From Marsupella aquatica (taxonomy: Eukaryota > Plantae > Marchantiophyta), in the NCBI GenBank assembly GCA_973895155.1, contig OZ316899.1, positions 11,337,675 to 11,401,674 of the forward strand: 64,000 nt of DNA, read 5' to 3'. The translations under genes were made by a program, and so were the position numbers. Shown here in pieces: positions 13,038 through 53,300 of this stretch. Under the pieces are notes generated by a model. It made no database searches and had not been told where the DNA came from. It saw only the letters and a program-made list of their open reading frames with translations. How positions within the stretch are numbered: position 1 is the stretch's first letter; each line of letters begins with the position of its first letter.

Positions 13038-13049
13038 AAAATGAAATAA

Positions 13050-13225
13050 ATACCGTGCATCTCAATATTTTGAGACCTCATCTATTTATGCCTCCATCTC
13101 AATTGTGCCACCAACTTGTGACAATCGGACCAAAATTGCGTCGGATCCCTTGTACACATATTTATAAATATACTTCACAGCAACAATGCCATTTGTAACT
13201 TCAAGATTTATGAGAATTTTGTCAT
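13050..13225 (-). pseudogene. Helitron RepHel fragment (Rep-helicase linker), upstream part of the same Helitron
   Basis: INLEVTNGIVAVKYIYKYVYKGSD...DEVSKY*DAR followed by a GT donor. In Helitrons this precedes the RLxVHL block seen at ~5290. Confidence 0.75.
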
Positions 13226-13341
13226 TGAGGAGGACATGTAGGAATGTTTTTTTCTTAGAGGGATAGTTGGCAGTCATCAATTTTTGTGGAGCCGCCTGTG
13301 AGGGTGCCAGATGATAAGTTTTGGTCTCCAGACTAAGCAAA

Positions 13342-16391: not shown

Positions 16392-19300
16392 AGTGGTGGA
16401 CCTTGCCACCCAGCGCCCTCGCCAATCCTAGCACTCATGCCTACGTGCCCTTGGTGCCCAAACGCCTCCACGGAATACCTCAAGCAAGTAACCTAGTGCC
16501 CCTTGCACCGCCAGCGGCCCCTCCCATACAAAGCTGCACTTGCTCTCTAACACGACCGCTACTCAATGGTCCTCCCTATCTGCACAATCAACCAAACACC
16601 TCGGTAAGTAACCCTTTAGGATCTAGAACTCGCCAAGTCTAGCTTCCTAACTCAAGCTCAACAGACGTTGGTAAATAGGTCAGCGATAGGTCCTCCCGAT
16701 GCCATAAGCCGAAACCAGAACCCACGCCCACTGTTCGTCCAGAATAGCTCCTTCCTTGGGTGCGGCCCAGGTTTCCCCTTGTACCTATCCATCACCAACT
16801 GACCGCCCTGACCCCAGGACATGCTCATGACCCAAATAACGTAGCTTGTCCTAAAGCTTGTCCCAAGCTTGTCCCAACACGTCGGGACCAGAATGGCCCC
16901 GACTCTAGCAACCGCTCCCAGTTTTCCCCACTAGTGGTCTAGGGGCCGAGCACCCTTGGGACTCAGTCTCCGCACCTACTTGGCCTTGCCTCCCCAACGC
17001 AAGCTCCCTTGGGAGACTGAACACGACTTGGTTGCTGTTCGGTAGGATTTGGCAAGTGGGCGAGCTAACACCCGCAAACTGTGAGAACCCACGGCACCCC
17101 CAGACCCAGCTGAGCTCAGGAGGGCTACTGAGAGATTTCCAATGCACCTAAGAAATCCTCCAACAGACTTCCCATTGGGAAGATATCGCCATTTCCGTTT
17201 GGCGATTTCCCTTAGTGTCGCGACCGCCGCGGCTCACGATTTCGGCTCGCCCTTAGCCCCCAGGGAGACACCACTCCCCTCATATATGCTTTTGGAGACC
17301 TGCCACCCCCGGACCAGCTTTGGTCCCTAAACATTTGGCCACCATCCCGGATCCCATCGCGCATAATGGGCGCGCCACGAACTGGCAACGCCCATAACTT
17401 TCTTGATAGGCATCCGCAAGCAGAGTGCCTTAGCCCGTTGTGACCGGGCCGACCCAATGCTCATGCCTAGGCCCTCAGGTCTGATTGCCGCTTGGGGCCC
17501 CGACCGGCCCAACCCGGATCGGGCCACAACTTGCGCCCCAAGCGTCCGTTGCCAATGGCGTCAACTCCATTGGCCTTGGGCCCAAGAGGAGCTCACTCCC
17601 AAGTCCTCAAAACTCAAAGTCCATCCGGAGGTCCGGACGGCCATCCTTGAGCCCGACCCATTTCCCCTTGACCCGACCAGCCATCGGCTAGTCCAAGTCC
17701 TTAGTGTGTGCCCCCAGCTTGGCTCCTTGCCTTGCTAGTGACACGTCTCATTGCCCACAAGTCTCCCTATGCTAAGTCCTCCCCGGATGGCCTATCCGGG
17801 CCTGGACCATAAGGGAGCTCGGCATCGGAGTCAGCGATGCCAGAGCTAAGTGTTAAGGTAGTCGAGTTCCGCGACTTGCACCCCCCTTAAAAATGGTCAC
17901 GTTTGCGTGACCTCAGTAAACGTTCCAACGCGCCTAGACCACTTTGGGCCTTAAAATTTTTATGAGGTAACAAATGGTTTGCCCATAAGGCTGATGCAAA
18001 CCAGGTTGGTATGCGCATTCCAGACTTAGGAAATTCCAACCTATCCCACTTATCCAAGTAGGATGTCAGTCCAAACGGGTAAGCTAACTCCAAACTTGTC
18101 GGACCCAATGTCCTCCCCTTGGGGCACTCCCCTTTGGTTTGAACTAACCCGCCCACAAGATGTAGGGCGGGCACCATCAACTTCCACTCGCAAAAAGCAA
18201 ATTGGCCGCCCAACAACCTCTAGCACCAACGCAATCCAACTTTATCCTTAAGAGGCCAAGAGGAGTGAAACTAGGATACAACTCACAAAGGTGGCTACAA
18301 CTGCCTATACCAGTTCACAACAGTGGTAGGCCGCTTTGCTTACGATAGCTTCCAAGGATCTCTGAGGCATTACCCAAATTTTCCTTTGGTTCCCAAGTAC
18401 TCTCGGCCTGATCATAGCCAGCCCACTTCACCAAATACTCTAAGATTTGCCTTCCCAACTTGCGATTGTAACGGTGGTCCAGAATTGCCTCCACCTCAAA
18501 CTCCTCAGCATCCTCCACCAGCATGGCGTCTGGACGCAAGACTTGATACCGGTTGGGATCATTGTCTTTGACAAACTTCTTGAGCCGATTAACATGGTAG
18601 CTTTTGCCCACGCCCATTTCCTTGGGTGTCTCTAACACCACCAAAACCGGATTATCCTTGTGGGCCTATCGTATAATGCGATAGGGCCCCGCATATCTGG
18701 GAGCCAACTTCCTACTTATGTTCCCGTGGTATTGCTCAGGTCTCAACTACAACCAGACGCTCTCCCAAATTTCAAAGCTTACCTGGCGTCGATGTTTATC
18801 CCCTTGCTCCTTGTACTGACTTTGGGCAAGGGTCATACCCTTGGTAGCCGCTTCCACAACTAGGCGCCGCTCTCGAATAAAATTGTCCGCAAAAGGAACC
18901 TTGCTTTCCGTCCGCCAAGCTTCCGAATTTATAAACCAGGAGGGCGCCCTTGGCGTCCTCTCTATGGCCAACACAAACGGCGCAAACCCTGTCGCCGAAT
19001 GCTTGGTTGAGTTATACCTAAACTCGGCCATTGTTAAATGCTTTGCCCAATCCTTTTGATTGGCTGTCACAAAGTGACGCAAGTAGTCCTCCACGATACC
19101 ATTAACCTATTCCGCTTGGCCATCCGTCTCATGATGATACGCTGATCCCCTAGTCAGATCTGTTTCGGATAACCGGAACAACGCCTTCCAGAAATGGCCC
19201 GTGAACTTGGTATTGCAATCGGACGGGATGTGCAACGGCAATCCCCATTCTTGGAAGACATTGTCAAATACTAGACCGGCAACCTCTTGGGCCGAAACCA

Positions 19301-34073: not shown

Positions 34074-37000
34074 CCACGCCCATTAGTGGTGGGAGGGGTG
34101 CTTCTCCTGGAGGGCGCCCCCGTATCTAATCTCTAACTTTGAATTCTGGGAGCCTCCTTGCGCTCTAAGAAGATGGAGGACCGGCTGAGAATGGCTTCAT
34201 GGAATGTATGTGGGTTAGGTGAACTAAATAGGAAACAACTAGTCAAACAGTGGATAAAAGGATTAATTGCTCCGCTTGGAGCGCTGGCTCTTCAAGAAGT
34301 CAAGACAAATAGCTTTAGATTAGATTTAGCACTTCGAGCAATTCTACCTGATTACCACCACTTCATGTCTGAACCAGAGGAGGGCAGAGGGGGATCGACG
34401 CTATCTATTCACCCAAAGTGGAAGGTGCTAAATCAGGGAATTTTAGATTTTAGATTTTAGAATAAGAGCTATATGGGTAATTCTAGAACATAAGAAAGGG
34501 CCGATTGGAATTGCCAACATTTATGCACCAAACTCAGCCAGATCTCGGGCGGCTGTATGGCATGAACTCAAAGTGGCTCTACCTCAGGCGTATTGGATTA
34601 TATGCGGGGATTTCAACATGATGGAAGATCGTGCGGACTCAATGGGAGGATCTTTGCTTATTAGGGGGCTGGAATTAGAGTTCTGGCGCTTCCTGACAAC
34701 CAGGTTTGATTTGGTGGATGCATTGAAGATCGGAGGGCTAAAGTCTGGTTCTCTATTCACATGGAGGAGATGGAGAGGAGACGAGCTGATGCAATCAAGG
34801 TTGGATCGCTTCTACGTTAGCGATGGAGGCTGGTGGGTCTGTGGTCCGGTTTGTCTCATGCACGATGGTGGGTCCATGCTTTCTGATCATGACCCTATCC
34901 TGTTGGAACTTTGACTCCAAGAGGCTAGGGAGTGCGGAGGGCTGGACCGGGTTCACCTCTTTAAGGCTGACCCCACTGTACTGAGAAAAGAGGAAAACAG
35001 GGAGAAGCTCGAAGCTACCTGGAGGACCGGAAAGGACAATGCTAGGGATCCACACGCGAGATTTGCCATAGCTTGCAGCTCACTACGGAAGGCTTACAAG
35101 GAAATACAGGCGCTACCAAAGAAGAAGGAAGAAGAAATGAACTTCTTAAGAGCCCAACTACAGAATCTGAAGGAAATGTTAGAAAAATTCAACTCTGAGG
35201 AAACAGTGACGGAGTACATCCTGGCGGAAGATCAGCTTCACCTGGCTGAAATGGAGGAAGCGATGCTAGGCAGAAGATTGGCACAAATTAAATGGCTTGG
35301 AGAAGGGGAAGAAAGCACTAAATTCTATTTTGCAACGATTAAAGCCAAACGAGACCGAGAGAAGATTCCTTCCTGCAAAGGGAGGATGACTCAACCATAG
35401 TGGACCCGACGCTGATAATGAGAGAAGTGGAAAAGCACTGCAACAATCTATACTCCCCTGAGCCACTTTCTTACTCGGAACACCAGGATTGTTTGGCTGC
35501 TCGGAAGCGGCTGCTGGAGAAAATGAGGCACTCTCTTACTGCAGCTGAGATTTGCATGATGGAAGAAACCCCATCGGCAAAAGAGGTTAAAGACGGACTT
35601 TGGTCTCTCCCACTTGATAAGACTCTAGGACCAGGCGGACTAACGGCAGGGGTCTTTAGGGCAGGCTGGGATTATATTCACACGGATCTGCTGGAGATGA
35701 TACAAGACTACTGGTTAACAGGCAAGCTAGCGGCAAGCATCAAGCTGGGCATTATCAAGCTGATACCCAAGAAAGAGGACAAAAGATTCTTGAAAGACTG
35801 GAGACCACTGACCATGCTAAACACGATTTATAAATTGATTGCTAAGCTTTTGGCTGCCCGGATGCAACTGGTCATCCCTAAGTTGGTTAACAAGCAGCAA
35901 ACTGGGTTCATCCTGGCTGTCACATCTTAGAGAATATATTGGTAGCATGGCTCACGGGAAAATGGGCTCGGAAGACAAGACGTCCGACACTCTTTCTGAA
36001 GCTAGACTTCAAAAAAGCTTTTGACAGGGTAAATCACGATTACTTGTGGGAAACAATGCTTCTCCTAGGGTTCAGTAGTTGGACCATTCAGCTAGTTCAA
36101 GCTCTGCTCTCGGTGGCTTCTTCACGGGTGGTTGTGAATGGGCTTATCTCAGAGGCAATTGTGTTGCGTTGGGGGGTGAGGCAGGGCTGCCCCCTCTCTC
36201 CCTTACTCTTTGTGCTGTCCACCCAACCGCTGATGACGTTCTTAGATTCAGAGATCAAAGAAGGAAGAGTGCAGGGAATCAAGATCAGCGAACAATGTAC
36301 TATCTGCTTCAGACTCTTTGCAGACGATGTTGGAATGTTTATCCCTGCATGTGAGACTGCTTTCTCTGAGGCTAGAGCAACGCTGGCCTGCTATGAGTGC
36401 GCGTCTGGTGCTAGGCTGAATCTCCAAAAATTGATTATCATACCATTTGCGCTTGAGCGCATTCCAGAATGGCTAAGCAAAATTGAATGCAGGATCAGCA
36501 AAGCAGGAGAGCTGCATATCTATCTTGGGGCGCCATTCGGACTAGAGCTTGGGGCGGATCAAATTCACAAATTCTGTTTAGACAAGATCGCTAAGAGATT
36601 GGCTTCCTGGGCTAACAAACTGATCTCATTCACAGGAAGGACTCTGCTGATTAAACAGGTTTTGTTAATTGGCTATCCCTATCTACCATGTGATGCACTT
36701 GAGATCATTTGCTCGGCTGGCAAAGAAATTGGTGGCGCTGTGCAGGGACTTTCTGTGGGGCTATAATCAAGAGGGGAACAAGAAGATTCCTCTGGTGGCC
36801 TGGACAAAGATGGCACGGCCTAAAATAGATGGCGGACTTGGTTTCAAAGACTTCCGCACTCACTCTGAGGCTCTACTTACCCAATGGTTCATGAAGGCTC
36901 TGGATTGCCCCACTGCTGAATGGTCGCTACTGCTGCAGGCTAACCTTGATCTCATGGGCTGGAGGCTTTACAAGGTGATACGTCGGAACAATTACACTTT

Positions 37001-37094
37001 CTAGGATAAGTTATCAATGTGCTCGCCACGGGCTAGCGGAGGAATGCCTTACACATGGATCAGCCTATTCATTAAAAGTGTATTATTATTTGAT

Positions 37095-37422
37095 TTATGT
37101 ACATTTGGGCAATGAAAAGTGTACTTTTGGGCTTGGAAAAGTGTACATTTGACCAATGAAAAGTGTACATTTGGGGATAAAAAAGTGTACAATTGGTCTA
37201 AAGAGTGTATATTTGGGCAATGAAAAGTGTACATTTGAGCATCAAAATATGTACATTTGGCTTAAAAAGTGTACATTTTAGTACATTTGGCCTAGAAAGT
37301 GTACATTTGAGTGAAAAAAGGATACATTTGGCTTAAAAAGTGTACATTTCAGTGCATTTAGTCTAGAAAGTGTAGCTTTGAGTGCAACAAAGAGTACATT
37401 TGGCCTAAAAAGTGTACATTTT
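37095..37422. repeat. Left subterminal repeats, ~16 copies of AAAAGTGTACATTTG with ~21-22-bp period
   Basis: Directly visible; the motif also overlaps the inner part of the TIR. Confidence 0.9.
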
Positions 37423-37642
37423 CCTGAAAACTTTTATTGTAATCATTTAAAATAAAGAAATTAATAAAAAATATTTTTAATTATGCAGAAAAAATAAACA
37501 TTCATATTCATAATAATCAAAAGTTTAGAAAATGAGTAGATAGTCTACTAAGTAACTAAACACTCAATGGCATGGTCTCACAATATATATAACTCTTACA
37601 TAAAAACTAGTAACTATCTAATTATATCTTAGCTAGTGACAA

Positions 37643-40600
37643 CTAAGTGTACTTGTCCATCCTTTGGAGATAACTTTGGACAGTTTGTAGAACATTTCGA
37701 GGAATCTTCAAACCTCTGCCAACCATGTTTTCTTCCTTCATTCCAGATTTAAAACCATACATTGCAGAATTTGCATACTGCCAATGTTGAGTGTTCTCAC
37801 CAAATCCTGGATCTCGTTCCCATGTCTTGGTGGACATGAAACAATTGAGATACCTAGCACTCTCACTCACATCAAGTTTAGAGTGTTTAGGCCTCCACCA
37901 TTCCACGGGGAACATTGGAGCATATTGTTGAGTCAAAGGAGGGTCTCTTGAAGATGCAATTGGGACTTCATGCTTAGGGTCCACCTGACCCAAAGCTCTC
38001 ACCAACCAGAAATGACCTCCACCATTTTTCTTCTCCCAATCATCCTCGGGTCGAAGAAACACAAAGTTTCCTTCACAAATATCCTGGAGGGGAATCCACC
38101 GTCCTTGTTCTCTCTCAGCTCGAGATCCAACAAATGGTGCTGCTTGATCTTCCATCTCTTCCAAGACTTCATTTTGAAGAGCTGTCATCTCTGCATTCTC
38201 CTCATCTTCACTTAGAGGACCACTCTGTTCGCATGCCGATTGGTTGACCTTGTAACCAGTGCTGTGGTTAGTCTTAGGCCAAAATCCATTTTTCAATGGA
38301 AATTGATTATTTCCCTCCCCTTCCATTGCAAGCCCATTTGACAACAGCTCCACAATTCTTTCCCAATATTTAACAAGAGGAAATCTTTCCTTGTATGCTA
38401 TTGACGTCTCATCAATGCAACTCCTTCTAAAAAAATCAAGGTACTTGTTAAGGAATGGGATTATCTCTTCTGATTTTTTGTGTATCTCTCCTATGGATTT
38501 AGCTAAGGGTTGTCCACTGGGTAAAAGAAGAGAATTTGTTATTGGATCAGTTGCCCAAATGCACCTTCCGCCAACGGGAGCCCAAGCTTGCTTAACATGG
38601 GACTTATACTGAAATATTGGTACATTATCTCTCATAGAGAAAAGAAATGATACCGGTTTTGAGTGACCTTGAATATCTTTGACCTTAAAACTTTGAAGAT
38701 ATTCTTTGTAAGATGCAACTTCTTGTATCAATCTTGGAACTGGATGAATGCTCTCACATTCCCAAACCTCTGCCATTAGTGCAAGAAGGGTTGCAACTTC
38801 CTTGTGCTGAACTTGATATGATACCTTGGAAAATAGTGCATCAACATCTTTGTGCGTATGACCAACCATTAGAAAGGACATTTGAACAGTTTCAAATATT
38901 CCTCTACTCACAAGCTCCGAGCAAAATGCCATGACCGTTTGGTTTTTGTTGTCCTTTGCTGAATTATCCATTTGCAATGTTAGGTGCCTTGGCAAGGGCA
39001 TGAACAACGGACTGCCCTTCTCGCCACCCACGTCCCCTCCATCATCCTCATCCTGTCGGGTTGGGATGGTCTCAGTCTGACTGTCGGCAGCTCCATCTTC
39101 AGAACCAATATACCTATTTACTTGAATATTCTTTGGTTCCAAATATCCCGACAAAATGCATCAAAGTCAAGTAGGGCTTGAAAGAAAGGTCTGTGAGGTT
39201 CCCAATGCAAGCCATCAAGCATGTCACCTGTCTTGTCTCCATTGTACTCTTCAAGATCTCGAAGACACTTAGCCAAGGATGTCACTGTGAAATTTGCATC
39301 TCCTGGCCAAAGGCCAGTGACACTAAAGTGTGCATATACTCCTGGATCTCTCCCGTGGGTCAACATCCCTGTGAGAGCGATAGGTAGCGGCATTCCATGA
39401 CCCGAAAGTGATTTAGGAGTACTAACCATTTTTGGAATCCATGTCTTTGCTTGATCCATCTTGTCGTGAATAATGCAAAGATATTCTCCTGGATGTTGCT
39501 TGGCCATCACTCGATGAGCGTAGTAAACATATCTACGTGACATTTGCTCACGAAGATGTTGAGCTCTTTTTTCTTCAATTTCAGCACGTTCTTTTTTCCT
39601 TATCTCTCGCATCAAACTGTCTTTGTATTCACAACAAAGCGTACACTTGGCAAATGCGCCATCCTTGTGAAAACTGAAGTTTGCAAATGATGTGCTCCAT
39701 ATCTTGTAGAGAGTGTTATCCGTAACAGGAGGAAGCCCTTCTTCCTTCATCTTTGTTCTCACATCTTCCAAAATCTCTAACTTTTTGTAACACGCTGGAA
39801 GTCGATACTCAATGTTGTCTGTCCCATGAGCCCCTCCATAAGGCATATGAGGCATTGGCTCTGCATTTTGAGTCAAAAATGCCTCTAGAAGAGCTCGCGC
39901 ATGCAAGGTATTTGACCTTGTTTTCTTCAAGCCTGTGTTCCCATGGAACCCAATTTTGCAACCCTCCATGTATCTTCTCTTGTAATCATAATACTTGGTG
40001 TGACTAAAACCATGGATGGTTGCAAATGCATCTTTACAGATGACCATACCTTTGAGAACATGGTGTCCCTTATCACGAACATCATCCTCTCTGTAGTGGA
40101 AGAGGTTGAAAATGTGTGATGTTTTGGACTCGCTAAACATCCCGTGAAATTCCATCCTAACATCTTCTATATCTTCCCTTGGCATAATGAGACAACATTT
40201 ATGCTTGCAGCAATTTACTCTTTTGATCTCATCAATTGCGGCTTCTGTTGTTTTTGAAACTGCCTTGGTTTGCAAGAGCCTCCTTTTCTTCTCAACAGGA
40301 TCAACTTGATTCCTCTTGTTGAAGTTATATGGCCTTTGTCGACATCCGGATGCGGATCCAACCACATGATCCGGATTCAGATCATCCCTATCCATTGACT
40401 CCATATTCTCTGTACCTTCTACCAGAATGTCTGACAAAAATTTTCCAGTTGCTACTAGTTTTGTGTGATCAATTCGCCATCGAACCAAACTAATTACTCC
40501 CTTGTGAATGCTTGGAAAGTATTGCGATTCCATGACATCTTTCACAGCAACCCCTACATAGTCTTCTCCCAGGATTTCATCATCAACAGCCGCCGTTGCT

Positions 40601-41449
40601 TGAGGCACAGTGATAGTCCCAGTGGCAACCTTACTCGATCGTCCTGAACCAATGTATAATTCGACCAACTCTGACATCCAATTGGACCGTTGGTAATAAT
40701 CAGAATGAGTTTTGGTCGATTTTGTTGATGGAGAATGTGAGACAAAACTCTCCTCAATTAAAACGTCGCCATCACCTTGCTTCTTAGAGGAAGACTTTCT
40801 ACCTTCATCAACATTCCAACCTTTTTTATGAACATCGGCCAAGTCCCAGAGAACCCATGAGTCTTTTGCCTCTTCAATTGTTTCAGCCCCATTGTGTATG
40901 TAAGGTAAAGCCTTACTACCATGAATAACATCAGTGATTTTCACACTGATCCGAGACTCACCAAGTAATATGTTGTGACATCGGTCCTTTGGATTTACCT
41001 TGAAAATAACTCCAAGGGCTACACAACACCCATCAATGAGCATTTCAACCTCGTCCCCTTGCCTTAGAGTGTTTGATGCATCCTCCATAACAATTGTAGG
41101 AGATTTATCCAAGTTATTATCTGGTCGAGTTGAACAACTACCAGTACTGATGCGTTTTTGGGAATCTAGAGTTATAGAGAGATACGCGCACGAGATCTCC
41201 CAAATAACACATGAGTCAATGGCATCAAAAATATTTTCTACCCTTGGTAGTGGAAATGGTAGTTTTCGAGTTGGCTCGAAAACCTTCTCCACGAGCACAC
41301 CAATTCGATTATCCCCCAACAATATGTTGTGCACCCTATCCTGGGGGTTAATTTTCTGAACTGTCCCACAATCAACATCATATCCATCAATTGTCAAGGT
41401 CATATCATCACCTCTTGAAAACCTTCCAGTCATTCTTGGATTTAGTAAC
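37643..41449 (-). pseudogene. Sola-like (DUF7869-type) DDE transposase, ~1270 aa, one frameshift near 39140
   Basis: CCKHKCC; FAKCTLCCEYK; CIIHDKMDQAK; LTGMLTHG; LTLQMDNSAKDNKN; FLMVGHTHKDVDALFS. Three N-terminal repeats of the VAxGxV..P..HNILLG...LP...A..SxVxW type. AG acceptor at 41450-41451 suggests upstream exon(s). Confidence 0.8.
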
Positions 41450-41569
41450 CTGCACAATTTTCAGAAAAACCATCACAAATCCGAATGACAAGAATTTGAA
41501 GAGACTCACAATTATCCATACGGTCATTTGATTGCCATTCCGAGAATCCAAACATTGGCTCAACTATCA

Positions 41570-43010
41570 CGCTTGGATTGGGGTGGTCCAAATCAAAACC
41601 ATGAAGATTGTATTCCGAAGGTCAAATTTAAGCATCTCACTTGAATTGGGATCGTCCGAATCCAAACCAACCTCTATCCAACACACCCTCTTGGATTTGG
41701 ATGGTCCGAATCCAAACCCAGATGGGATCCCAAAGGTCCCAATTCAACAAACGCGCTTGGATTGGGATGGTCCGAATCCAAACCCAGATTTTATTTCAAA
41801 GGTCCCAATTTGAGCACCGGGCTTGGATTCGGATGGTCCATCCGAATCCAAAACCAGATTGTATTTCAAAGGTCCAAATCCAACCCACCATCTTGGATTC
41901 GGATGGTCCAAATCCGAACACAGATTCTATCCCGAAGGTCCCAATTCAACAAACCGGCTTGGATTGGGATGGTGCGCGAATCCAAACCCAGATTGTATTT
42001 CAAAGGTCCCAATTTAAGCATCGGACTTGGATTCGGATGGTCCAAATCCAAAACCAGACTGTATTTCAAACGCCCAAATTCAACCATCTCGCTTGGATTA
42101 GGATGGTCCGAATCCAAACCGAGATTGGATCCCAAAGGTCACAATTTAAGCATTGCACGCTTGGATTCAGATGGTCCGAATCCAACACACCCTCTTGGAT
42201 TCGGACCATCCAAATCCAAAACCAGACTGTATTTAAAACGCCCAAATTCAACCATCTCGCTTGGATTGGGATGGTCCAAATCCAAACCGAGATTGGATCC
42301 CAAAGGCCACAATTTAAGCATTGCACGCTTGGATTCGGATGGTCCGAATCCAACACACCCTCTTGGATTCGGACCATCCGAATCCAACACACCCTCTTGG
42401 ATTCGGACCATCCAAATCAAAAACCAGACTGTACTTCAAACGCCCAAATTCAACCATCTCGCTTGGATTGGGATGGTCTGAATCCAAACCGAGATTGGAT
42501 CCCAAAGGTCACAATTTAAGCATTGCACGGTTGGATTCGGATGGTCCGAATCCAACACACCTCTTGGATTCGGACCATCCGAATCCAAAACCAGACTGTA
42601 TTTAAAACGCCCAAATTCAACCATCTCGCTTGGATTGGGATGGTCCAAATCCAAACCGAGATTGGATCCCAAAGGCCACAATTTAAGCATTGCACGCTTG
42701 GATTCGGATGGTCCGAATCCAACACACCCTCTTGGATTCGGACCATCCAAATCAAAAACCAGACTGTATTTCAAACGCCCAAATTCAACCATCTCGCTTG
42801 GATTGGGATGGTCCGAATCCAAACCGAGATTGGATCCCAAAGGTCACAATTTAAGCATTGCACGGTTGGATTTGGATGGTCCGAATCCAACACACCCTCT
42901 TGGATTCGGACCATCCGAATCCAAACCAAGATTGGAATCTGATCAGATGGTCCCAATCCTAGAAATGGATTGGATTCGGATGATCCGAATCCAAACAACA
43001 ATCTAGGATT
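41570..43010. repeat. Array of the 25-bp palindrome TTGGATTCGGA-N3-TCCGAATCCAA with a ~168-bp higher-order unit
   Basis: Higher-order units start near 42051, 42219, 42421, 42588 and 42756, each with three palindromes (one has four). Degenerate copies lie on both flanks. Confidence 0.92.
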
Positions 43011-43978
43011 AGGACCATTATAATCCACACATCAAGTCTGGATTCAAATGGTCTAACTCCACAATGAAGATTATGTTGAGATGGATATATTGAGATTGAG
43101 ATCTCTTCCTAATCAAATTTAGACATTCCGGGTTTTTCGGAACATTGGGTAATTCATGAAATAATAATTGGGAAGTCACTAGAATGCAGAACAAAGTGAA
43201 AGGGTTTGTCTCTCTTCCCTAAGAACTCAAAATAAGCAAAGCGACTAAGACCATAACTCACCTCAGCAGTCTTGTTTTTCCAGTATGTCTCCAAGGTTGG
43301 CTCTGCTACCTCTAAATTGATGAATAAGTTCATATCAAACTGACTAAGAAAGCTATCAAAGCCACTTCAAGTCTAAACTCCATCAGAGAGAAGAGCTGAG
43401 GAGGAGTTGCGCAGACCTGGATGCCCAAGTGAAGATATGAAACTAAAACAACAATGATGTCCGTAGAGTACCTCTTATACTCGTGGGTTGGTATGTTCGG
43501 CCCTGAATGTGCGATCCGATAAGGTTGAGGCAACACCGAGTATCGCGGTTAGAACAATCATCCAATCCTTTTTCAATCCATTGTGTCAGACAATACAGCT
43601 AGCGTCCCACCCAAACTGATAGGACCAGATCCCTTCTTGGTCTCTATCCGTACAGAGATGATCCGTACAGAGATGATCCGTGCAGCGATCATCCGTACGC
43701 AAACAAGCCTTTCAGGAGGGGGTAAAGGGAGTACGAGGTCTTCCACAGACCTCATTGTTGTTTTGCTCTCTGTCGCTCCTCACTCTCGCTCCTCCCTCTC
43801 GCTCCTCACTCTCGCTCTAGCTCCTCATTCTCGCTCCTCGCTCTCGCTCTTGGCTGGCTGCCGCCGCTATCCCTTGCCCTTGCCCTAATTGCCTTCTTGC
43901 CCTAATCTGCTGCAACGCCCTAGATCTTGCCCATCTTGACGTGTCCTCAATATATCCTGCCACGTGTCACTCGTAAAA

Positions 43979-46900
43979 ATGGAAGTTGCCAAGAAAACCG
44001 TCATCGTCCTGCTCGCCGAAGAATCTGATGACTTGGATCTCTCCTCTGTCGGTGATCTTGTGGCCCTAGCGCTTAGGGATTCCCAAGAATTTCAATCTCA
44101 AGTCCAAAGTAAGTTTCCGGAGGTTTATTCATGCATCTTAAGTTGTTGGATTCGGATGGTCCGAATCCAAGAGCGTTGTTTGGATTCGGACCATCCGAAT
44201 CCAAGTGGGTTGTTTGGATTTGGATGGTCTGAATCTAAGAGGGTTGTTTGGATTCGGACCATCCGAATCCAAGTGGGTTGTTTGGATTTGGATGGTCCGA
44301 ATCCAAGTGGCTTGATTGGATTCAGATGGTCTGAATCCAAGAGGGTTGTTTGGATTCGGACCATCCGAATCCAAGTGGGTTGTTTGGATTCGGATGGTCC
44401 GAATCCAAGTGGCTTGATTGGATTCAAATGGTCCGAATCTAAGAGGGTTGTTTGGATTCGGACCATCCGAATCCAAGTGGGCTTCTTGTATTGGATTCGG
44501 ATGGTCCGAATCCAAGAGCCCTCAATCTCACTTTAACAGTGATTTCTTAAAACAAATTTCATGGATTTGAAGTCTAATATGAATTTTCACTCTCCAATGC
44601 AGAGAGTGATCTGGTGAATACAACTCTCGCCATTTCAGAGGCAGACTGCGACGATGGGCTCATTTTGGAGGACCGCGATCCAGGATTTCGGTGGGGACTT
44701 GAGTTCTCGCAAGTTAACTTCCGCCTGAATTCCTTTAACATTCAGGATCCAGTGTTATGTGTCAAGATCAGGACAGGCAACAACCAAACATTGGTCATCG
44801 GACCCGTGGTCTCTGTGGGAATGATAGGAAGAGGAATGAATTCTATCATTGTAGAGGTGTCGGACACGATGAGGTGGGCAAAGTTGCAGCTCCCCACAAA
44901 GGCTTTCTCGGCCGAGTTCAATGTGGAATGGTATGCAAGTGGGGAATTAAGTGTGTTGTCGATGGGATTCTTTCCAAAATCCTACACAAAGGAGAAGATT
45001 ATTGGAGGACTGAAGGGAATGCTTCCTTTGGACATTTTTTATGGGTTTCTTTATTTGAAACTCAACATTGTAAACAACCCATCAAAGTTCTCTCTTCCAT
45101 CCACATGGACTCTTAACAATTTGCTTGAGAAAGCAGGTCTGGTGTCACCAGACTCAAATGTTTGGATCGCCAAGGCACTAGCCTTTGCACACACGCTTGA
45201 CCTGGAAAAAGCAAATCTATGGGTAGAGTCTTTGGTGAAGTTGAGAAAAAGTACACAACCACAGAAAATAATTGAGTCTACGCCAGCCAAAGGAACTCCA
45301 GCAACTACGACGGAGACAGCACAAACTACTGCAGCAACAACCATGGATAGAGCGGCAGGGAAGCGAAAGCAGAGGGAGAAGAAGCTTCTGGTTGAGAAAC
45401 CTACTTCAGTTGAGAAGAAGATCACGGCTCCAGCCAAGAAGAAGAAGCTTCCAGCCGAGAAGAAGTCGAGGGAGAAGAAGAAACAAAAAACCGACACCGG
45501 AGTTGTGAATTCAACTCCTATAGATTTTTCATTACATGCTGAAGATGAGGGTGATAGGCCACATGCTCCAGAGGAGAAAGACGTCTTAGAAGGGAATGAA
45601 GTTCTTCAACAAATGGAGTAGTACTATACTTTTGGGATAAACAAATTTTTTCTGATCCCAGTTGAAAGTATTTTTTGCCGCACCAGCGAGACTATGCTAT
45701 CGGATGATGAATTTTGATCATGTGCAAGACATTGCTGATTCCATGATCAAAACACCTGGGCATGAGCCACATGTCGCTGATTTGATTCCTTTTAACGTCA
45801 AGCGAAGAAAGGTACTCCACTTTGAGAATACGGAGTCGGACCGGAAGGATTTTTTGGCCGGAGTGAAAAAGGGCAAGGTCCAATTTCTAGCCGTTAGTGG
45901 TCAGCACTCTGCGAGAGCTGCGAGATGGATTCATGATTGGGCAACGAAGGATGCCAAGCTCACCCAGTTGGCCAAGAAGTTAGAATTCAGGAAATCCAGA
46001 ATATTGTCTGATCGCACACCGTCTTCAATTCTTGTTGAGCACTCCATGAGATCGAACGCCATCAATAGCACGATGGTGTTTCAGTCTTGCTTTAAAGATA
46101 CAGTTGTCCATGCGAGGCGGCAGTTTGTTGAATGTGGAAATCCAGACAAACCAAAACATGGCGACAACAAAACAAATGCTCAAGACAACCAAAAATTTCA
46201 GGTAAGAAATGTGATTACTTTGTATGCATTTCTCTACCATAGAGAGTAATTCTATTTTGGATTCGGATGGTCTCAGTCCGACACGATTTATCAAAGAGTA
46301 TTGGAACTTTTGGAATGTTTAGTACGAGTTTTGTTTTTGATTGAGACCATCCGAACCCAAAACTATTATCGCACATTAGAATCCTTTTTTTCCAACCCTT
46401 GCGTTGGGGATAACTGTCTAGCTTTCCTTTTGGATTGTAGGATTGGTTGGCTCTGGCAAGAATGACTATGGGCAGGAAGGACTTGCAAAATGTATACTGG
46501 CTACTTTTTGCGGACAACGATCTTTTTGAGTTGTGGCGGTTAGTCTGTGAGATGTGGTTGCATGGGAAACTTCCTGATGGAGCTGGGATGGAAGGAAATA
46601 ACAAGTCCAAAAAAGCAATTACTGTTGCCATGTTTCGTCCCTTTGATGGTGAGTTGATCTCACAGAAAGACATCACAAAAATCCTGACACAAGTGAAGTC
46701 AGGAAAGGCATTGCTGAAGAAAGATGCCACAAATAAATCTGACATACCCTCAATAGAGGAGCTTGCGAAGGATGTGAAAAAAGTGAGGAAGCTCAAGTCT
46801 CTCATTGAGGAGTACTACTTTGGCAAGGATCCAAGGAATTTCCCTTTGGATACCGACTGGAAGAAAGTTGTAGAGGTTCTGCCATTGTTGAGTGTTGACG

Positions 46901-48816
46901 CAAAATTCAGTAGATGCAGAAGAGCGGCTGGTGAAGTTTTTCTGTCAAATCTGTTGAAGCCAAATCATACCAGGGAGAGTGCAATTTTGCCAATAGCTCT
47001 GGTGATGCGCCTTGATGACATTTATTGCCAGAAGTTTGGCGGAGGGACACATTCTCGGAGCCAACCGTGGGTCACGTTCTTTAGTGACAATCTAATGAAA
47101 ACAGTTGATCCACCAGCAATAGAAGAATCATCTCCAACGTGCTCACTTGCCATTGTTGACTTCAGTCGAGATCACCAGAAGCTGTGGACGGAAGCAGAAG
47201 TTTTGGTCTTTCTGCAATACATTGTGGAGCTACCACGAAATCTTACAATCGTTGTAGCCATAACTGTTCATCCGGGGCCTCTTGCAATGAATGTCCTAAG
47301 CTCACTTCGAAAATTGGGACAAGAGAAATCTCTCACCATTCACATTGAGTATGGGAGTTATTCTCGAGAGGATCAACCGCACCCGCTTGATTCGTGTTGG
47401 GGAGGCGGAATTGAAGAAGTTATATTCGCAGGAATTTCTCGAGATGAAAATGTGAATTGGAATGATGTTTTCAAACCCAATCACCCAAAGCCAAAATTCT
47501 TTTTTGGTTCAAAAGATACTGATTTTGAGGTCACCAAGATTGACACTGGGAAGGCAAAGGTTGACACAGACGACGTGTCAAAACCCGAAGATCTAAAAAT
47601 GATGCTGACCCCAGAAGAGGCGACCAAGGTTTTGCACATGGCCCCTTGATTTGAGATAGTTGGTGCTTGTGGTGGTTGGGTGAATCCACATGCCAAACCC
47701 ACGCGGATGATACAGAGGATTATTGAATCCTTGTCAGAAGCTGGAGACTTGATTCTTGATTTTTTCTCGGGTGGTCAAGTGATGAAGACAGCATTCTTGG
47801 TGCAACGCGAATGCTTTGTTTATTGTGACTCTCAAGATGAGAGACACTTTGTGGAAGCGTATGCTTCATTCCTTTGCGAGAGGGTCCCCTCAATCAAGGA
47901 AAATTGGGATCCTCGTGGTGGGAGTTCTAGGCATTGGAAACCCACTATTGCGGATGTTTCTGTCGAACATGAATCAGCTGATAATTCCGAAGAAGTGGGC
48001 GCTAAGTCAGTCAAAGATGATGGGGCATCAGAGGTGGCATATGCAAAGAATTTGGATGACCGTGTAGGTCAAAGTGAAAGCATAGAACCCTACGATGTTG
48101 ATGATAACGTTGGTCTTGCACCACGCCCTTCATCACGTGCAGATGACGTCCCTTTGGAACCCTATGAAGTTGAGGTTGATGACAACTTGGACAAGGATGG
48201 TCTCAATCCAAATGTGGTGCAACAAGAAACGGACGAAATTGGTGATCCGATTGACATTGATACATTTGAAAATCGTTTGTCAACCAATTTGGTCGCGGAC
48301 GGTGGAGACAGACAGGTCAATTCGAATGAAGCTGACACCCAAAATTTGATTCCCGGGACGGCTGTCAAAGTACGTGAGATTCCCATGACCCCAGAAGCCC
48401 GTGCATCAGCGACTGTTGACAACCAGGCAGGTGCTTCAATTTGTCCTGACACACTCTTTTCAGCTTCTGATGACAAATTGGTTTTTGTTCGTTCACACTC
48501 GGGAAGTCCAGTTGTCCTTCCTCTCTCAAAGAAAAAAGGGAATAGAGTTGGATCAACCGGATGGAGGTCACTTGAACGTGATGCACGATGTTATGTGTGG
48601 AAAAGTGGGCCAAATAGAGGCCAAGAAGTTTCATTGGATGCTGCTCCATCGATTCTTAACAGGAAGGAGTATAAGAGAGGAGAATTGGGATTGATAACTC
48701 CTGTTTGGACGTCACCTTATTGGGTAGAACAAAGTACTTCAGATGTCAATTTTGAAATCCAAGAGGAGCTGGGTGTTGACATTATTGATGAATACGGATC
48801 TCTTTTTTCAGACTGA
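43979..48816 (+). pseudogene. Spliced cargo gene (~1370 aa): Lys-rich region, ParB/Srx-like domain, beta-class N4C/N6A DNA methyltransferase-like domain, acidic tail
   Basis: Exons 43979-44108, 44603-46201 and 46441-48816, with GTAAG...AG introns that keep frame. ParB-like: HVQDIADSM...FLAVSGQHSARAA. MTase-like: NPHAKPTRMIQRIIESLSEAGDLILDFFSGG. Lesions: TAG at 45619, frameshift near 45672, TGA at 47647. Confidence 0.68.
44147..44515. repeat. Second array of the same 25-bp palindrome: 11 copies, ~34-bp period, inside cargo intron 1
   Basis: Copies near 44147, 44180, 44214, 44248, 44282, 44316, 44350, 44384, 44418, 44452 and 44491, mostly with 9-bp spacers. Confidence 0.92.
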
Positions 48817-48877
48817 GATCAAACCGTCTGACTTTCCATTTTTTCATACCAATCTAAAATACTTCTCGGTCTCACAG

Positions 48878-50087
48878 AATGCGGTCAGCAATTAGAGCCT
48901 CGATATCCACCTACGCTCTTTGGGGCTTCTAAAAATGGTATGTAGGTTTTCTTTGTTGTTAGTCCTTGTCTTTTATTTTTGGACTGAGACAATCTCAGTC
49001 CAAAGTTCAAATTTGGTTTTCTTTCTAAGAGTTGTATTTGTTGCACTTGCAGAATCGAGACCTTGTCCCATCAAGCGGAAGTTGCTGATTTTGGATCTTA
49101 ACAAAATACTTTGGGATTCACTTGAATTCCAAAGCAAGGGCAAATCCAGAAACATTGTGACCCCAAATGGAGTGCATTGGGATAGATCAAATGGAACTAG
49201 TCGCATGTATACACAGAGGCCAGGGTTCCATGAGTTTCTAAAGTTGGTTTTTGACCGGTTTGACGTTGCAATTTGGACATGTGCTGGGATGCCACGGACA
49301 GTGAAAATGTTGAACATGATGTTCACTGTTGAGGAGCGGTTGAAACTGAAGTTTGTATTCACACAGGTGGAAGCCTTTGACACAGGCATTCAAAGGCGTG
49401 ACATTACAAATGGAAAGGCAAATGTGCTATTGAAGGATTTTCGGGTGGTATGGAGTGCATTTGGAAATCTATATGATGAAACCAACACACTCCTTGTGGA
49501 TGACTCCCCCTTGAAGGCATTTGCCAACCCAGACATGACCGGACTATTTCCAGTGCCCTACACGCATGCCAATTGTGGAGACAATTTTCTTCTAACAATT
49601 CTTTGGCCATGTCTTGAGAAACTGTCACATGCAAGTGACATTCGTTGTTATCTTCTCCTAAACTCTCCAATGGTCTCTATTGCACATTAAGAGAGACAAG
49701 GCAAAAAATGAGATTACTTATGATCAACTTAGTAAGAGATGTGCAGCAAAAATTTGGAAGTCACAGTATAGGCATAGTGTGCTGGACCTCAATAGCAATG
49801 AGATTCCTTGGGCTGTGAAGCACCGTATATGTAGCTTACGTCCTGAGGTGGAACTTGACGATGCACTTGTCACCTCACTTGCTAGATCATTTGTAGGACG
49901 GGAATATTCAGGTCTGTATAGAGAAAATCCCAGACACTTTTTGCAGGAGATTATAGCAGTTAGGAACAACACCACCAAATTTCATCTCCCTGAAGATAAA
50001 GGGAGTTGCAACTGTGACATTAGGGTAGATAGTAAAGGAGACAAGGGCACGTGCTCAAATAAATATTGTAAGGAGCACTTTGTTTAG
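48878..50087 (+). pseudogene. FCP1-homology / NIF-family HAD phosphatase-like cargo, frameshift near 49668
   Basis: KLLILDLNKIL (motif I variant), RPGFHEFL, FDVAIWTCA, KDF, NTLLVDDSP.K...NP. Exon 48878-48937 splices in frame to 49053. C-terminal CNC..C..YC. Confidence 0.8.
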
Positions 50088-50333
50088 AGATCTGACTCAT
50101 GTTAAGCCCATTAGATAGTAAAAATGGGTGCCAGCCCTGGATATTCATTGTAAGTTTGGACACAATTGTATATAATTATTTCACACATTATCAATCAATG
50201 GTCCTTGCCTAGGCTTCTTTGTGCGTAAATGTTTTTACAAGTATGATCTCTATCCCATGGTTCTTTGTGAACTAATAAGTAATATAATACTATTATAATA
50301 AATATAATATAATACTAATAAGATTTGGCCTAT

Positions 50334-50391
50334 AAAGTGTACATTTGGGCTTCTTAAAGTGTACATTTGGGGACATAAAAGTGTACATTTT
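50334..50391. repeat. Right subterminal repeats, 3 copies of AAAGTGTACATTT
   Basis: Same motif and ~22-bp spacing as at the left end. Confidence 0.85.
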
Positions 50392-53300
50392 AGGACTGAT
50401 TTGTGAACAAAAGAAAATACACTTTTAATTAATAGGCTGATATGGGGCCTGTGGAAGGCCTGGGACACCTTAAGGCGTGGCCTCTCTTTTGTGCCCGGTG
50501 TGGACGGTATACCTGGCAGATGGAGCATTCAGGACTCAATTCGATGTCTCGCCGGGCCTCACTCCTGGCCGGTCACTGATTTGGAGGAGGTCACAAAGAC
50601 CTTAGGGAGACTAGGAATTAGGAAAATAGCTGATTGCTGGTCTGGGGGCTCAGGGGTATGGATCGACCTTTCCTGTCGCTGGCATTATCTTAGAGGTGTC
50701 TCTGAAGAATGTAAGTCACAGTGTGCACTCCTGCTAGATGTCATCCATCGTGGTCACTCCTGCTGGCTGGACCTGGAATCGGGTGCTAGGCAGTGGCGCT
50801 GGGCTGACACTTGGGCTTTCTCAAAGTCCTTTCAAATTAACAACCAACGAGCTTACAAACTCTTGAGGGACAAAAGCACTGACTTTGAGAGATGGAATCA
50901 AATTTGGGGATGCAGGCGATTGGAAACAGAATGGAATTCTGTCTGGACTTGAATTTGGAGTTCTGATTTGTCTTCCAGGGCGAAAACATTCATTTGGCGC
51001 TTGATAGTTGGTGGTCTCTTCACGGGATCTTGGGCTGCTAAGATTGGTGCAGGCTCAAGTATATGCCATGTTTGCCCTGGGAGAATTGAAAGCATCCCCC
51101 ACCTTTTCTTTGGTTGTGCTCACGCCATGCTCTGTTGGGGAATCGGAGAGTCCAGCTCCTTGAGACAACTGTTTGGCAGGGGTTGGGGTAGCCTAGAACT
51201 CCTTGTTGCTGTTGATTCCAAAACACACTCAATCTGCTTGCTTTTTCCTGCATTATCAAATGTTGTGGGCTTTATGGATGGGACAAAATGAGCAGATTTT
51301 TGAGAAAATGCTGATCCGAGTATTTGATTTTGGGCTGGTCCTCTTGGAAACTGAGACTCACTTGCGTGCTGCGGACTGGTGCCTCCCCATTGGTGGGCGG
51401 CGCATCAGACTGGCTAAGGCTAGGGATCTCATAGCTTTAGAACGACGATACTGGTTTGCTAGGAGTACTGGCAGAGTCTCCTCAGTGGCTGCATTGCTGG
51501 TCTAGGAGTGATAGTTATTGGAAGAGGGTGAATGGGTTACCTCGCTTATCGGCTCTAGGGCTCTACAAGTTGACATGATGTGTGGGTCACTCACGTTTTG
51601 GGCCACTAGGTTTAGTCTCCCCTTTTTATTGTGATTCTGGCCTTTGCTTTTGCCAGCTGGCCTCCCTGAGGGAGTTGTGCTGTTATATATATGGGGCTGT
51701 TTGCTTCCCCCCGGCCGTGGGGTTTTCGCGGTCTCACCTTTTTATTATAAAAAATATTTTCCCAGGAAAGAGAGGAGGACGAGCCACTTCTGAGCTTTGA
51801 GAAGCCCTACCTATATGCTATAGGGGCTCTCATGTTCTTGGCTAATCAGACACGTCCGGACATAGCGTTTGCAGTGAGCCTTCTAGCTCGACACAGCTCA
51901 CAACCAACCATCAGGCATTGGAATGGTCTGACAAGAATTTTCCGTTACCTAATTGGTACGGTGGACATGGGCCTGCATTTTCTTACTCAAACAGATGGAA
52001 TACTAACCGGCTATGCAGATGCCAGTTACCTTTCTAAACTTGCAGATGCTAAATCCCAAACAGGGTATATCTTTTTAATTGGCTCAACAGCGATGTCTTG
52101 GAAAGTACCAAGCAAACCCTTACTACAACTTCATCAAACCATTCCAAAATTATTGCTCTATACAAAGCCAGTCGTGAGTGCATCTAGCTCTGAAATGTAA
52201 TCAGTCATGTCTCACAGCATACAGGTACGCCAAAACTCACCTCTCCAACGATTATTTTTTAGGACAATTGTCCCTGCGTTGAACAAATTGTTGCTGGATT
52301 TATTAAAGGGGAAAAAACAAAGCATATAGCCCCCAATTTTTTCTTTACTCACGAACAACTGGAAGACACTATTACTGTCCTAGCTGACAAAACTGTGTCG
52401 ACCTACTAACCAAAGCATTGCCCCCATCTATCCATAGTGAACTAACAAAGTCCATAGGCATGCAAAGATGATCTTCTTTTATACAAGGTTCACTCTGAAG
52501 TGAAGCTGAACAAGTAAACGACAAGCCCAGGGGGAGATTGATACGATTGTACCTGGGAGAGCTTTATGGTTACACATGTAATACTGTGTGCAGAATTTAG
52601 CAAGCTGTTAGCGTTATGGAGAGGCTACCCATTGTCAAATCAGTTGTTTTTGGAGCCAACAACAACGACAAATTGTAGTGAGTCTACAAAGCTATTTTGC
52701 TCTCAACTGTAACAAGCAAAACCAGTGAGAGATTAACCTGATCAAGACAAACACGAGCGCAAGCCAGTGATGGTGTTTAGGGATAGCGATGGCCTTCATT
52801 ACAGAGCTCATTGGAAAATAGATTTGGCCGGGCATGAAAGACCAAGTGCGCCAAACAGAACACGTTCAAGCAGGCGCACTGGAGAAAATATTCTACCAAT
52901 TAAAAGGTGGACAAAGGCGCAGCCAAGTACTTACCACATTGATCACAATTCTGTACTATGAACGTTGCCTCTGATCCCCGAAGCCATCCATTCCATTCCT
53001 TAGAACTTCAAGCTTACAGTCCAAGATCAACTACACAACATATATGTCACGCCAAAAGAGTCGCCCTTACGCGGATTTTGGCTTAGGCGGCCATAAACTT
53101 TGTAAATATTGAGGTTTCGAGCAAGGAGGGACGTGCAAACAGTACTTATTCTCGTAAGTGGACTCTAACCACATCCAATTCTAATTCTACACACATCATA
53201 GGTATGTTTTGTGTTCCGCCGCCGGAACGTACCTTAAGTCAATGATTGGATTGACCCTGGCTTAAGGACTTCTAAGCCTTTGCATTATCCGCCTCCAATG

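Follow-up and report, generated by a model that had tools for sequence, protein, structure and literature searches.

A stretch of 64,000 nucleotides from the liverwort Marsupella aquatica (contig OZ316899.1, positions 11,337,675 to 11,401,674 of the forward strand, assembly GCA_973895155.1; hereafter called the window) contains at positions 37059-50441 a single transposon of the cut-and-paste type with a length of 13.4 kb. In addition to a transposase gene, the element harbors two accessory (cargo) genes in the opposite orientation and arrays of short palindromes. The first cargo gene encodes a protein with a part resembling DNA methyltransferases (MTases), the second one a NIF/FCP1-like protein. 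On the basis of its motif pattern and of target site duplications (TSDs) of 4 bp, the element is assigned to the Sola superfamily, Sola1-type. It is a decayed copy of an autonomous liverwort family of this type, whose multi-gene architecture is ancient and conserved. We regard the cargo and the palindromes as a self-targeted regulatory or anti-silencing system, an interpretation in which we place about equal belief and doubt.

The element, its insertion site and its relatives

The initial annotation had described a discrete unit with 26-bp terminal inverted repeats (TIRs), subterminal repeats and a 4-bp TSD, and its coordinates turned out to be exact. The TIRs (26 nt, one mismatch) gave only two matches in the 64 kb while none was expected from 100 shuffles. 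Next to them, 15-mers similar to AAAGTGTACATTTGG are located, 13 at the left and three at the right end, all on the plus strand, compared to 0.22 expected by chance. These repeats are probably binding sites of the transposase. Contrary to the palindromes, they are kept between species, since similar repeats exist at both ends of a complete copy from Calypogeia fissa (L001). The insertion had also been reported to split a LINE (long interspersed nuclear element), which holds true. The interrupted sequence is a degenerate plant L1-type LINE with several stops (34573-37058 and 50446-51291), whose Exo_endo_phos and RVT_1 domains lie upstream and whose zf-RVT domain lies downstream of the transposon, placing the insertion between the reverse transcriptase and zf-RVT. 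When the flanks were joined by a local script, one LINE reading frame passed through the restored empty site.

From left to right, a TIR and subterminal repeats are followed by the transposase gene (minus strand), palindrome array A, a CT-rich centre, array B, cargo gene 1 (plus strand), a palindrome, cargo gene 2 (plus strand) and again subterminal repeats and a TIR (Table 1). The divergent layout recognized earlier is thereby borne out by Pfam matches, with DUF7869 on the minus strand, PF01555 and NIF on the plus strand and the palindrome arrays in between. The central CT-rich tract is possibly a promoter or 5′-untranslated element. Gene models and lesions were deduced by comparison with other copies and homologues. 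The lesions of the window copy comprise a frameshift in the transposase gene at ~39150, a stop at 45619, one additional nucleotide at ~45671, a stop at 47647 and a deficit of two nucleotides at ~49670.

That the cargo belongs to the element follows from its relatives. Four C. fissa loci (L001, L003, L006 and L007) revealed the same gene order and orientation as the window, whereas L002 contains only the cargo. On the cargo strand of C. fissa, an exon with the N-terminal and SGQHS domains, an exon with the MTase-like domain, the NIF domain and the C-terminal domain are arranged opposite to the transposase. The copy in L001 is complete (1060-14386; 13,327 bp); it is bordered by the different TSD CATA, and its TIRs, (A/G)TCA.AGTATTCATTAAAAGTGGA, are related to those of the window. 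Since the same layout is present in several C. fissa copies, one of them complete with another TSD, a one-off capture of the cargo does not apply, and the multi-gene family suggested by the initial annotation, together with the check that it had proposed (same ends and cargo, other TSD), is corroborated by a whole architecture recurring between TIRs. A search with exon 1 of cargo gene 1 detected copies on six C. fissa contigs, and C. fissa relatives of the MTase-like exon were found as well. In two environmental or Logan contigs (L004 and L005) and in a locus of Riccia sorocarpa (L008), an MTase-like gene is likewise followed by NIF. Altogether, at least five lineages with identities of 30-60% share the gene order.

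Substitutions were counted by a local script in the cargo segments, using in-frame pieces around frameshifts and no letters inserted at breaks; rows for the transposase, whose segments were partly out of frame, were excluded. Between the window and C. fissa, the proportion of synonymous differences (pS) is saturated (0.75-0.83) while that of nonsynonymous differences (pN) amounts to 0.30-0.43. For the N-terminal/SGQHS exon, pN is 0.25-0.26 with pS again saturated. Comparison of the two C. fissa subfamilies yielded ratios of nonsynonymous to synonymous rates (dN/dS) of 0.13-0.34 for the MTase and NIF segments. Thus, purifying selection on the cargo is strong in all three segments, and the cargo has been maintained by selection during diversification of the family.

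In four runs of this or related genomes, between 140 and 2,530 short contigs per run matched region 44540-50100 (5,561 letters) with 90-100% identity, which is the signature of a high-copy repeat. All of these were fragmentary DNA contigs, and none showed a GT..AG joint. Most of the copies in the sequencing-run contigs are degraded. The summed contig depth, a weak measure, was approximately ten times higher at 49190-50100 (NIF and 3′ part) than over cargo gene 1; this excess may stem from derivatives consisting of the 3′ end only or from an additional family sharing that part.

Some further observations were made on individual loci. Riccia L008 contains, besides the MTase-like and NIF-like genes, three arrays of CTGTTTACG-AG-CGTAAACAG palindromes (9386-9664, 12537-12752 and 18134-18259), and no DUF7869 transposase was found within 22 kb. 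The module at this locus may reside in another type of element or in a non-autonomous copy. In L007 (3170-3230), two elements of the C. fissa family are situated end to end, their TIR tips ...GTAGTGAT and ATCACTAC... being separated by CTTT alone. This junction arose either by insertion beside an existing end or as a tandem junction; the right end of the L007 element was looked for and not found.

Table 1. Features of the Marsupella aquatica element and their positions in the window
Feature	Position	Strand	Basis
Left TSD copy (4 bp), ATGG	37055..37058		Flank comparison and restored empty site
Left TIR (26 nt), ATCAGCCTATTCATTAAAAGTGTATT	37059..37084	+	One of only two matches in the window
Left subterminal array, ~13 AAAGTGTACATTTGG-like repeats, period ~22 bp	37094..37423	+	Repeat search
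Transposase, ~1,270 aa, one frameshift at ~39150, DUF7869 core with three aspartates (DDD)	37643..41457	-	Pfam; continuous frame in C. fissa
Palindrome array A, ~25 copies, higher-order period of 168 bp, adjoining the transposase 5′ end	41570..43062		
CT-rich (CTCGCT) tract of the central region	43753..43862	+	Similar tract at the corresponding position of C. fissa L003
Palindrome array B, ~11-12 copies, period 34 bp, centre alternating TGG/CCA, directly 5′ of cargo gene 1	44133..44515		
Cargo gene 1, exon 1: lineage-variable N-terminal domain, Lys-rich linker, conserved domain with FLAVSGQHSARAA	44578..46201	+	Comparison
Cargo gene 1, intron, phase 0, CAG/GTAAGA ... TTGTAG/G	46202..46440	+	Homologues P0095 and P0177 cross the junction
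Cargo gene 1, exon 2: helical region, MTase-like domain, acidic linker, conserved C-terminal domain	46441..48816	+	
Variant 11-3-11 palindrome (one copy), TTGGACTGAGA-CAA-TCTCAGTCCAA, between cargo gene 1 and the NIF-like open reading frame	48979..49003		
Cargo gene 2: NIF/FCP1-family domain and conserved Cys/His-rich C-terminal domain	49016..50087	+	Pfam, comparison
Right subterminal repeats, 3 copies	50334..50392	+	Repeat search
Right TIR (26 nt), ATCAGCCTATTAATTAAAAGTGTATT	50416..50441	-	Other of only two matches in the window
Right TSD copy, ATGG	50442..50445		Flank comparison and restored empty site

The palindrome arrays

Two palindrome arrays were identified at 41641-42994 and 44146-44515. 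The underlying unit, TTGGATTCGGA-TGG-TCCGAATCCAA, consists of two inverted arms of 11 nt around an asymmetric centre of three nucleotides (11-3-11), which rules out a perfect 25-bp palindrome. Within the window, 66 of the 67 half-site matches are located inside the element, compared to 1.4 expected. In C. fissa and Riccia, palindrome copies also occur between cargo gene 1 and the open reading frame (ORF) of NIF, and in C. fissa L003, one array adjoins the 5′ end of the transposase gene and another one the 5′ end of cargo gene 1, as in the window.

The sequence of the palindrome differs between lineages. While the window lineage uses the unit given above (67 half-site hits), the C. fissa loci L002, L003 and L007 contain GAGCCTCGATAC-C-GTATCGAGGCTC (32-42 half-site hits each), L001 and L006 of the same species GCCTCGAGA..TCTCGAGGC (22-27 each) and Riccia L008 the unit mentioned before (15 hits). 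Each type gave only 0-5 stray half-site matches in the other lineages. Within the arrays, the units recur every 34 bp in the window and every 35-36 bp in C. fissa L001 and L003, and the Riccia arrays have periods of 48 and 64 bp. Geometry (arms of 9-13 nt, centre of 1-3 nt) and position are retained while the sequence changes; each lineage has palindromes of its own, and these are positioned 5′ of every gene. In every lineage, they have CpG/TCG cores.

The array variants at 41641-44515 mostly show CG>TG or CG>CA exchanges at the CpG of the arms, and the family copies in the sequencing-run contigs likewise differ most often by C>T and G>A. Such variants would fit a deamination of methylated CpG in copies that were silenced. 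The intron of cargo gene 1 contains a hybrid palindrome (46257-46281) composed of the canonical left arm and a right arm of the TCTCAGTCC type, and a half-site approximately 80 bp further on (46350-46360).

Cargo gene 1

Cargo gene 1 was reconstructed with the help of other copies. These have a C in place of the T of the stop at 45619 and one nucleotide fewer near 45671, so that the first two ORFs make up one exon. At the position of the stop at 47647 in exon 2, C. fissa L003 is open, with a frame of 684 codons reading across. The homologues P0095 and P0177 are uninterrupted across the exon junction, and P0177 is a single ORF of 1,009 aa ending with ...EYGSFVKR-stop. The window protein ends with IDEYGSLFSD-stop (stop codon 48814-48816). 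Because the homologues are unbroken over the junction and have the same kind of ending, the exon fusion is real and the gene ends at this stop.

The initial annotation had labeled this gene as a ParB-methyltransferase. As regards the second half of the label, the C-terminal part of the protein matches PF01555 (N6_N4_Mtase) with 26.8 bits against a cut-off of 26.7, and a family profile matches M.RsrI (E 5e-6). In an AlphaFold2 (AF2) model made from a 22-row alignment, residues 215-672 reached values of the predicted local distance difference test (pLDDT) of mostly 80-95, with short dips to ~57-63. The modeled fold resembles CcrM, RsrI, BceJIV, MboIIA, PvuII and the rotifer N4CMT (VIA-align Z 15.3-17.7); Foldseek gave a probability of 1.00 for beta-class DNA MTases, with EcoP15I Mod also among the fold matches. 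According to the model, the C-terminal half of cargo protein 1 has the fold of a beta-class N6-adenine/N4-cytosine (N6A/N4C) DNA methyltransferase with motif IV preceding motif I. The motifs read AIVDFSR (IV) and LDFFSGGQV (I) in the window. By contrast, the catalytic motif (D/N/S)PP(Y/F/W) is absent in all 14 relatives, which lack any xPPx tetrapeptide. The loop after strand beta-4 has D-F-[SA]-R in place of DPPY (variants DLLR, DLVR and DTTS). Motif I (DFFSGGQVL) is conserved, with the second Gly of FxGxG replaced by Gln. Among 1.84 billion representatives, 88 relatives of this cargo protein were detected, the named ones originating from liverworts and one fern.

The ParB half of the label found no support. 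Searches of Pfam, NCBIfam, PADLOC, PHROGs and the PDB profiles, including those with a profile of nine sequences, detected no match to ParB/Srx (PF02195) or DGQHR/DndB-type domains. The region bears the motif FLAISGQHSARAA, aligned as (A/I)SGQHS(A/S)(R/A)AA, in which the Arg of GxxR / DGQHR is replaced by Ser. AF2 modeled this part with a pLDDT of 40 (three-row model) or below 50 (22-row model), and it is from these low-confidence models that an alpha-beta-beta-alpha pattern around SGQHS, compatible with ParB/Srx, derives. Pfam scans of the cargo ORFs and eight homologues revealed neither SET nor 2-oxoglutarate (2OG)-oxygenase domains.

Cargo gene 2

The FCP1 phosphatase label given to the second cargo gene was correct with respect to the domain. 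NIF (PF03031) was matched over the full profile (1-160) with 57.2 bits against a cut-off of 21.8, and the nearest solved structure is that of UBLCP1 (3shq). An active phosphatase is a different matter, since every lineage has DxNx(I/V/M) instead of DxDxT in motif I: LDLNKI in the window, LDLNKIC in C. fissa, LDLNKV in L004 and LDCNGM in L005. The general acid/base Asp and the Thr are gone in all lineages; what remains is the first Asp together with the distal DD motif. Given the missing motif IV of the MTase-like domain and the DxN of the NIF domain, neither protein can be assumed to be an active enzyme.

In C. fissa and in other copies of this genome, which have two extra nucleotides at 49670, the NIF domain and the downstream ORF of 135 codons share one frame. 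In L004 and L005, too, the NIF ORF does not start with an ATG. A 5′ exon of cargo gene 2 using the ATG/GTATGT donor at 48935 and the acceptor at 49052 was considered and rejected because there is no in-frame join in the decayed window copy. Splicing of NIF onto cargo gene 1 was discarded too, as no GT donor precedes the stop in the window and P0177 ends like the window gene.

The transposase

The transposase matches Pfam DUF7869 and contains the core motifs HDKMDQ, MDNSAKDNKN and GHTHKDVD. In 12 DUF7869 proteins, D63, N64, N69, K70, N71, G98, H99, T100, H101, D103 and D105 are invariant, giving the family pattern D-N...N-K-N and G-H-T-H-x-D-x-D. The core was compared by eye, at the level of motifs, with Sola1-1_AP, Sola2-1_HM and Sola3-1_HM (Majorek et al. 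2014, PMC3985635 supplementary file 5). The regions of the first, second and third Asp read HDKMDQAK, MDNSAKDNKN and VGHTHKDVD in the window element and FDLEKV, SDNCGGQNRN and ERGHTQS in Sola1-1_AP. The core is nearer to Sola1 than to Sola2 (TDGCAGQYKN, SHG) or Sola3 (SDNASSYHGN, CRGKD). Sola elements generate TSDs of 4 bp (PMC10741241), and duplications of this type are present (ATGG in the window, CATA in C. fissa L001), with the TIRs of both elements starting with ATCA. The Sola-like transposase assumed by the initial annotation is thus supported by Sola1-type core motifs and 4-bp TSDs. The best relatives of the C-terminal ORF are from liverworts, namely C. fissa (66% identity) and many Riccia sorocarpa proteins named "DUF7869 domain-containing".

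At the N-terminus, three tandem repeats of ~100 aa are seen in the sequence. They could not be identified as three Tnp1-like domains, as just one sub-threshold match to PF03017 (TNP1/En-Spm) was obtained. At residue 102 of the C-terminal ORF (38839-38850), the window copy has Lys at the position of a nearly invariant Glu (DUF7869 consensus GHTHEDVD), which is probably a further inactivating change.

Discussion

How might the components of this element act together? The transposase would bind the subterminal 15-mers via its three N-terminal repeat domains and cut at the TIRs, giving rise to the 4-bp duplications. An element-encoded dimeric DNA-binding protein would recognize the lineage-specific palindromes 5′ of all three genes; cargo protein 1, in which the N-terminal part diverges more than any other region of the element, is the likeliest candidate. 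As the catalytic residues are lost family-wide (DPPY to D-F-x-R, DxDxT to DxN) yet the domains are conserved, the latter are read as binding or scaffold modules. The MTase-fold module might, as a methyltransferase does, hold on to DNA or to a flipped base within the CpG-containing palindrome, and the NIF-like module might hold the phosphorylated C-terminal domain (CTD) of RNA polymerase II (Pol II) or another phosphoprotein. Both modules could tether the transcription machinery to the divergent promoter of the element or shield this promoter from host silencing. For the module as a whole, we infer an anti-silencing role. In its most specific form, which we put forward as no more than tentative, the proposal holds that self-recognition is carried out by pseudoenzymes: an MTase-fold protein on fast-evolving CpG palindromes and a DxN pseudo-phosphatase on phospho-Pol II CTD or a phosphoprotein would keep the divergent promoter active against silencing, as a machinery that evolved independently of VANC (see below) and is maybe an exchangeable module related to the PAG cassette of red algae. 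Several points weigh against a self-targeted system of this kind. The identity of the palindrome binder is a guess, and the transposase could bind instead. The SGQHS domain is without a recognized fold in the searches run. The motif I-like DFFSGG is retained in the MTase-like domain, for which a non-canonical activity is therefore possible, and DxN proteins of the HAD type might preserve some chemistry. Moreover, the copy in the window is dead, with at least five disabling lesions, and the start of cargo gene 1, the NIF start, the promoters and expression are predictions from comparison.

If the enzymes were active after all, cargo protein 1 could be a non-canonical N6A/N4C methyltransferase acting on the palindromes of its own element, whose mark protects from host 5-methylcytosine/heterochromatin or labels the element, with the NIF-like protein as an active Pol II CTD phosphatase. 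The clear beta-class fold would suit this idea, as would the conservation of the motif I-like DFFSGG and of a VNPxxKP element, the nearly invariant Asp at the position of motif IV, the CpG/TCG cores of the palindromes in every lineage, and the precedent of bdelloid rotifers, in which a bacterial-type N4C methyltransferase of the same fold serves as an epigenetic writer (PMC8885841). We nevertheless think it unlikely since none of 14 family members contains (D/N/S/E)PP(Y/F/W/L/H), the loop reading D-F-[SA]-R, since the second Gly of FxGxG is Gln and since the general acid/base Asp and the Thr are missing from motif I of NIF in every lineage. It is also conceivable, albeit quite improbable, that the arrays serve transposition rather than transcription, either as internal sites for the transposase or an architectural protein (enhancer-like, in synapsis or copy-choice), or in a ParB/parS-like retention or segregation of excised DNA, with the cargo assisting the complex. 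One array does adjoin the transposase 5′ end, the spacing of 34-36 bp suits cooperative binding, and ParB-type proteins bind inverted-repeat arrays (bioRxiv 10.1101/2025.02.11.637652). On the other hand, ParB homology was unsupported by every search made, palindromes occur far from the ends as well, namely upstream of NIF and inside the cargo gene 1 intron, and it is the subterminal 15-mers that are conserved between species along with the transposase.

A host-directed module, i.e. a defence or addiction cassette or a domesticated pair of host genes only loosely tied to Sola and moving between transposon superfamilies, is very unlikely. It would account for the Riccia locus, where module and arrays exist with no DUF7869 within 22 kb, and red-algal PAG genes are known to hop between superfamilies (bioRxiv 10.1101/2025.02.11.637652). 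However, the TIRs enclose the module together with the transposase in the window and in four C. fissa loci, and palindromes flank the transposase gene as well. Least of all do we expect passenger genes and a satellite devoid of any function for the element, the cargo having been captured once in an ancestor and hitch-hiking since then, while the arrays are drifting tandem repeats. Internal satellites are common in large DNA transposons and most copies of the family are degraded, but drift is hard to reconcile with strong purifying selection in all three cargo segments at saturated synonymous sites, with a gene order shared by five or more lineages that are 30-60% identical, and with palindromes that preserve geometry and position while their sequence changes.

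With the Sola1 group, the element has in common TIRs, 4-bp TSDs and a DDD RNase H-like core (D...DNxxxxN[KR]N...GHT). Unlike Sola1, to which it is assigned by its core motifs, it adds two conserved accessory genes, palindrome arrays and three N-terminal repeats of the transposase. Sola elements larger than 10 kb are known (Bao et al. 2009, summarized in PMC10741241). Chimeras of Sola2 and Fanzor in dictyostelids (10-15 kb, 4-bp TSDs) also carry a gene other than the transposase (PMC3627910), the cargo there being Fanzor/TnpB and the subgroup Sola2.

The closest parallel is found in red algae, in which giant Plavaka, Mutator and Zisupton elements carry the PAG1-3 cassette, with PF01555 and ParB-like genes, and contain arrays of inverted repeats (bioRxiv 10.1101/2025.02.11.637652, where giant Plavaka and Mutator elements of Chondrus crispus are also cited). 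PAG3 adjoins these arrays and has been proposed to bind them, and self-modification or anti-silencing was suggested as the role of the cassette (bioRxiv 10.1101/2025.02.11.637652). Both systems are giant transposons with TIRs, an accessory PF01555 gene and inverted-repeat arrays beside an accessory gene. In contrast to the PAG elements, which were compared on the basis of their description, the element presented here resides in a land plant, has a Sola-type and not an EnSpm/Plavaka transposase, possesses a NIF/CTD-phosphatase-like gene and encodes an MTase-like domain fused to a putative DNA-binding part. Furthermore, PAG elements have a SET domain on the MTase protein and a 2OG-oxygenase domain on the ParB-like protein, neither of which was found in the cargo. 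The statement of the initial annotation that it knew of no description of such a combination passes over near precedents, namely the PAG elements (bioRxiv 10.1101/2025.02.11.637652) and the Sola2-Fanzor chimeras (PMC3627910). The concept has already been reported for red algae; what differs is the host clade, the transposase superfamily and the domain set, to which a NIF-like partner is added.

The logic of the proposed self-targeted system would be comparable to that of VANC and to the proposal made for the PAG cassette. VANC, the anti-silencing protein of VANDAL (Mutator) elements in Arabidopsis, targets tandem repeats that differ between related transposable elements (PMC5735166, PMC10398659). 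VANDALs too are plant transposons with TIRs, an accessory protein gene and short tandem-repeat motifs in their own non-coding regions. There is no sequence relationship, though; VANC has neither an MTase nor a NIF fold, the superfamily is another one, and the motifs described here are palindromes. A methyltransferase fold put to use for binding has precedents in METTL14, MTA9 and the MTase-like domain of the DIRS1 retrotransposon, in which the fold is kept, motif IV is degenerate and the domain acts, or is proposed to act, as a nucleic-acid-binding scaffold (PMC4738411). These proteins belong to another MTase clade than the beta-class, PF01555-like domain of cargo protein 1, whose nearest relatives are RsrI and CcrM; DIRS1 shares with it that it is encoded by a transposable element. 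A literature search on DUF7869 and on liverwort elements of this kind yielded no paper, and a search for liverwort ParB transposons returned nothing relevant.

Cut-and-paste transposons are commonly pictured as a transposase between two ends. Two modifier-like genes with matching cis-arrays, kept through deep liverwort divergence, indicate that accessory "epigenetic" modules occur beyond red algae and the VANDALs of Arabidopsis. The lineage-specific palindromes offer a directly testable code of protein-DNA recognition, and with catalytic residues consistently missing from both "enzymes", a well-defined question for biochemistry arises. Should the module act against silencing, it would provide a means of controlling chromatin in a sequence-specific way in bryophyte models and would help to explain bursts of DNA transposons in liverwort genomes.

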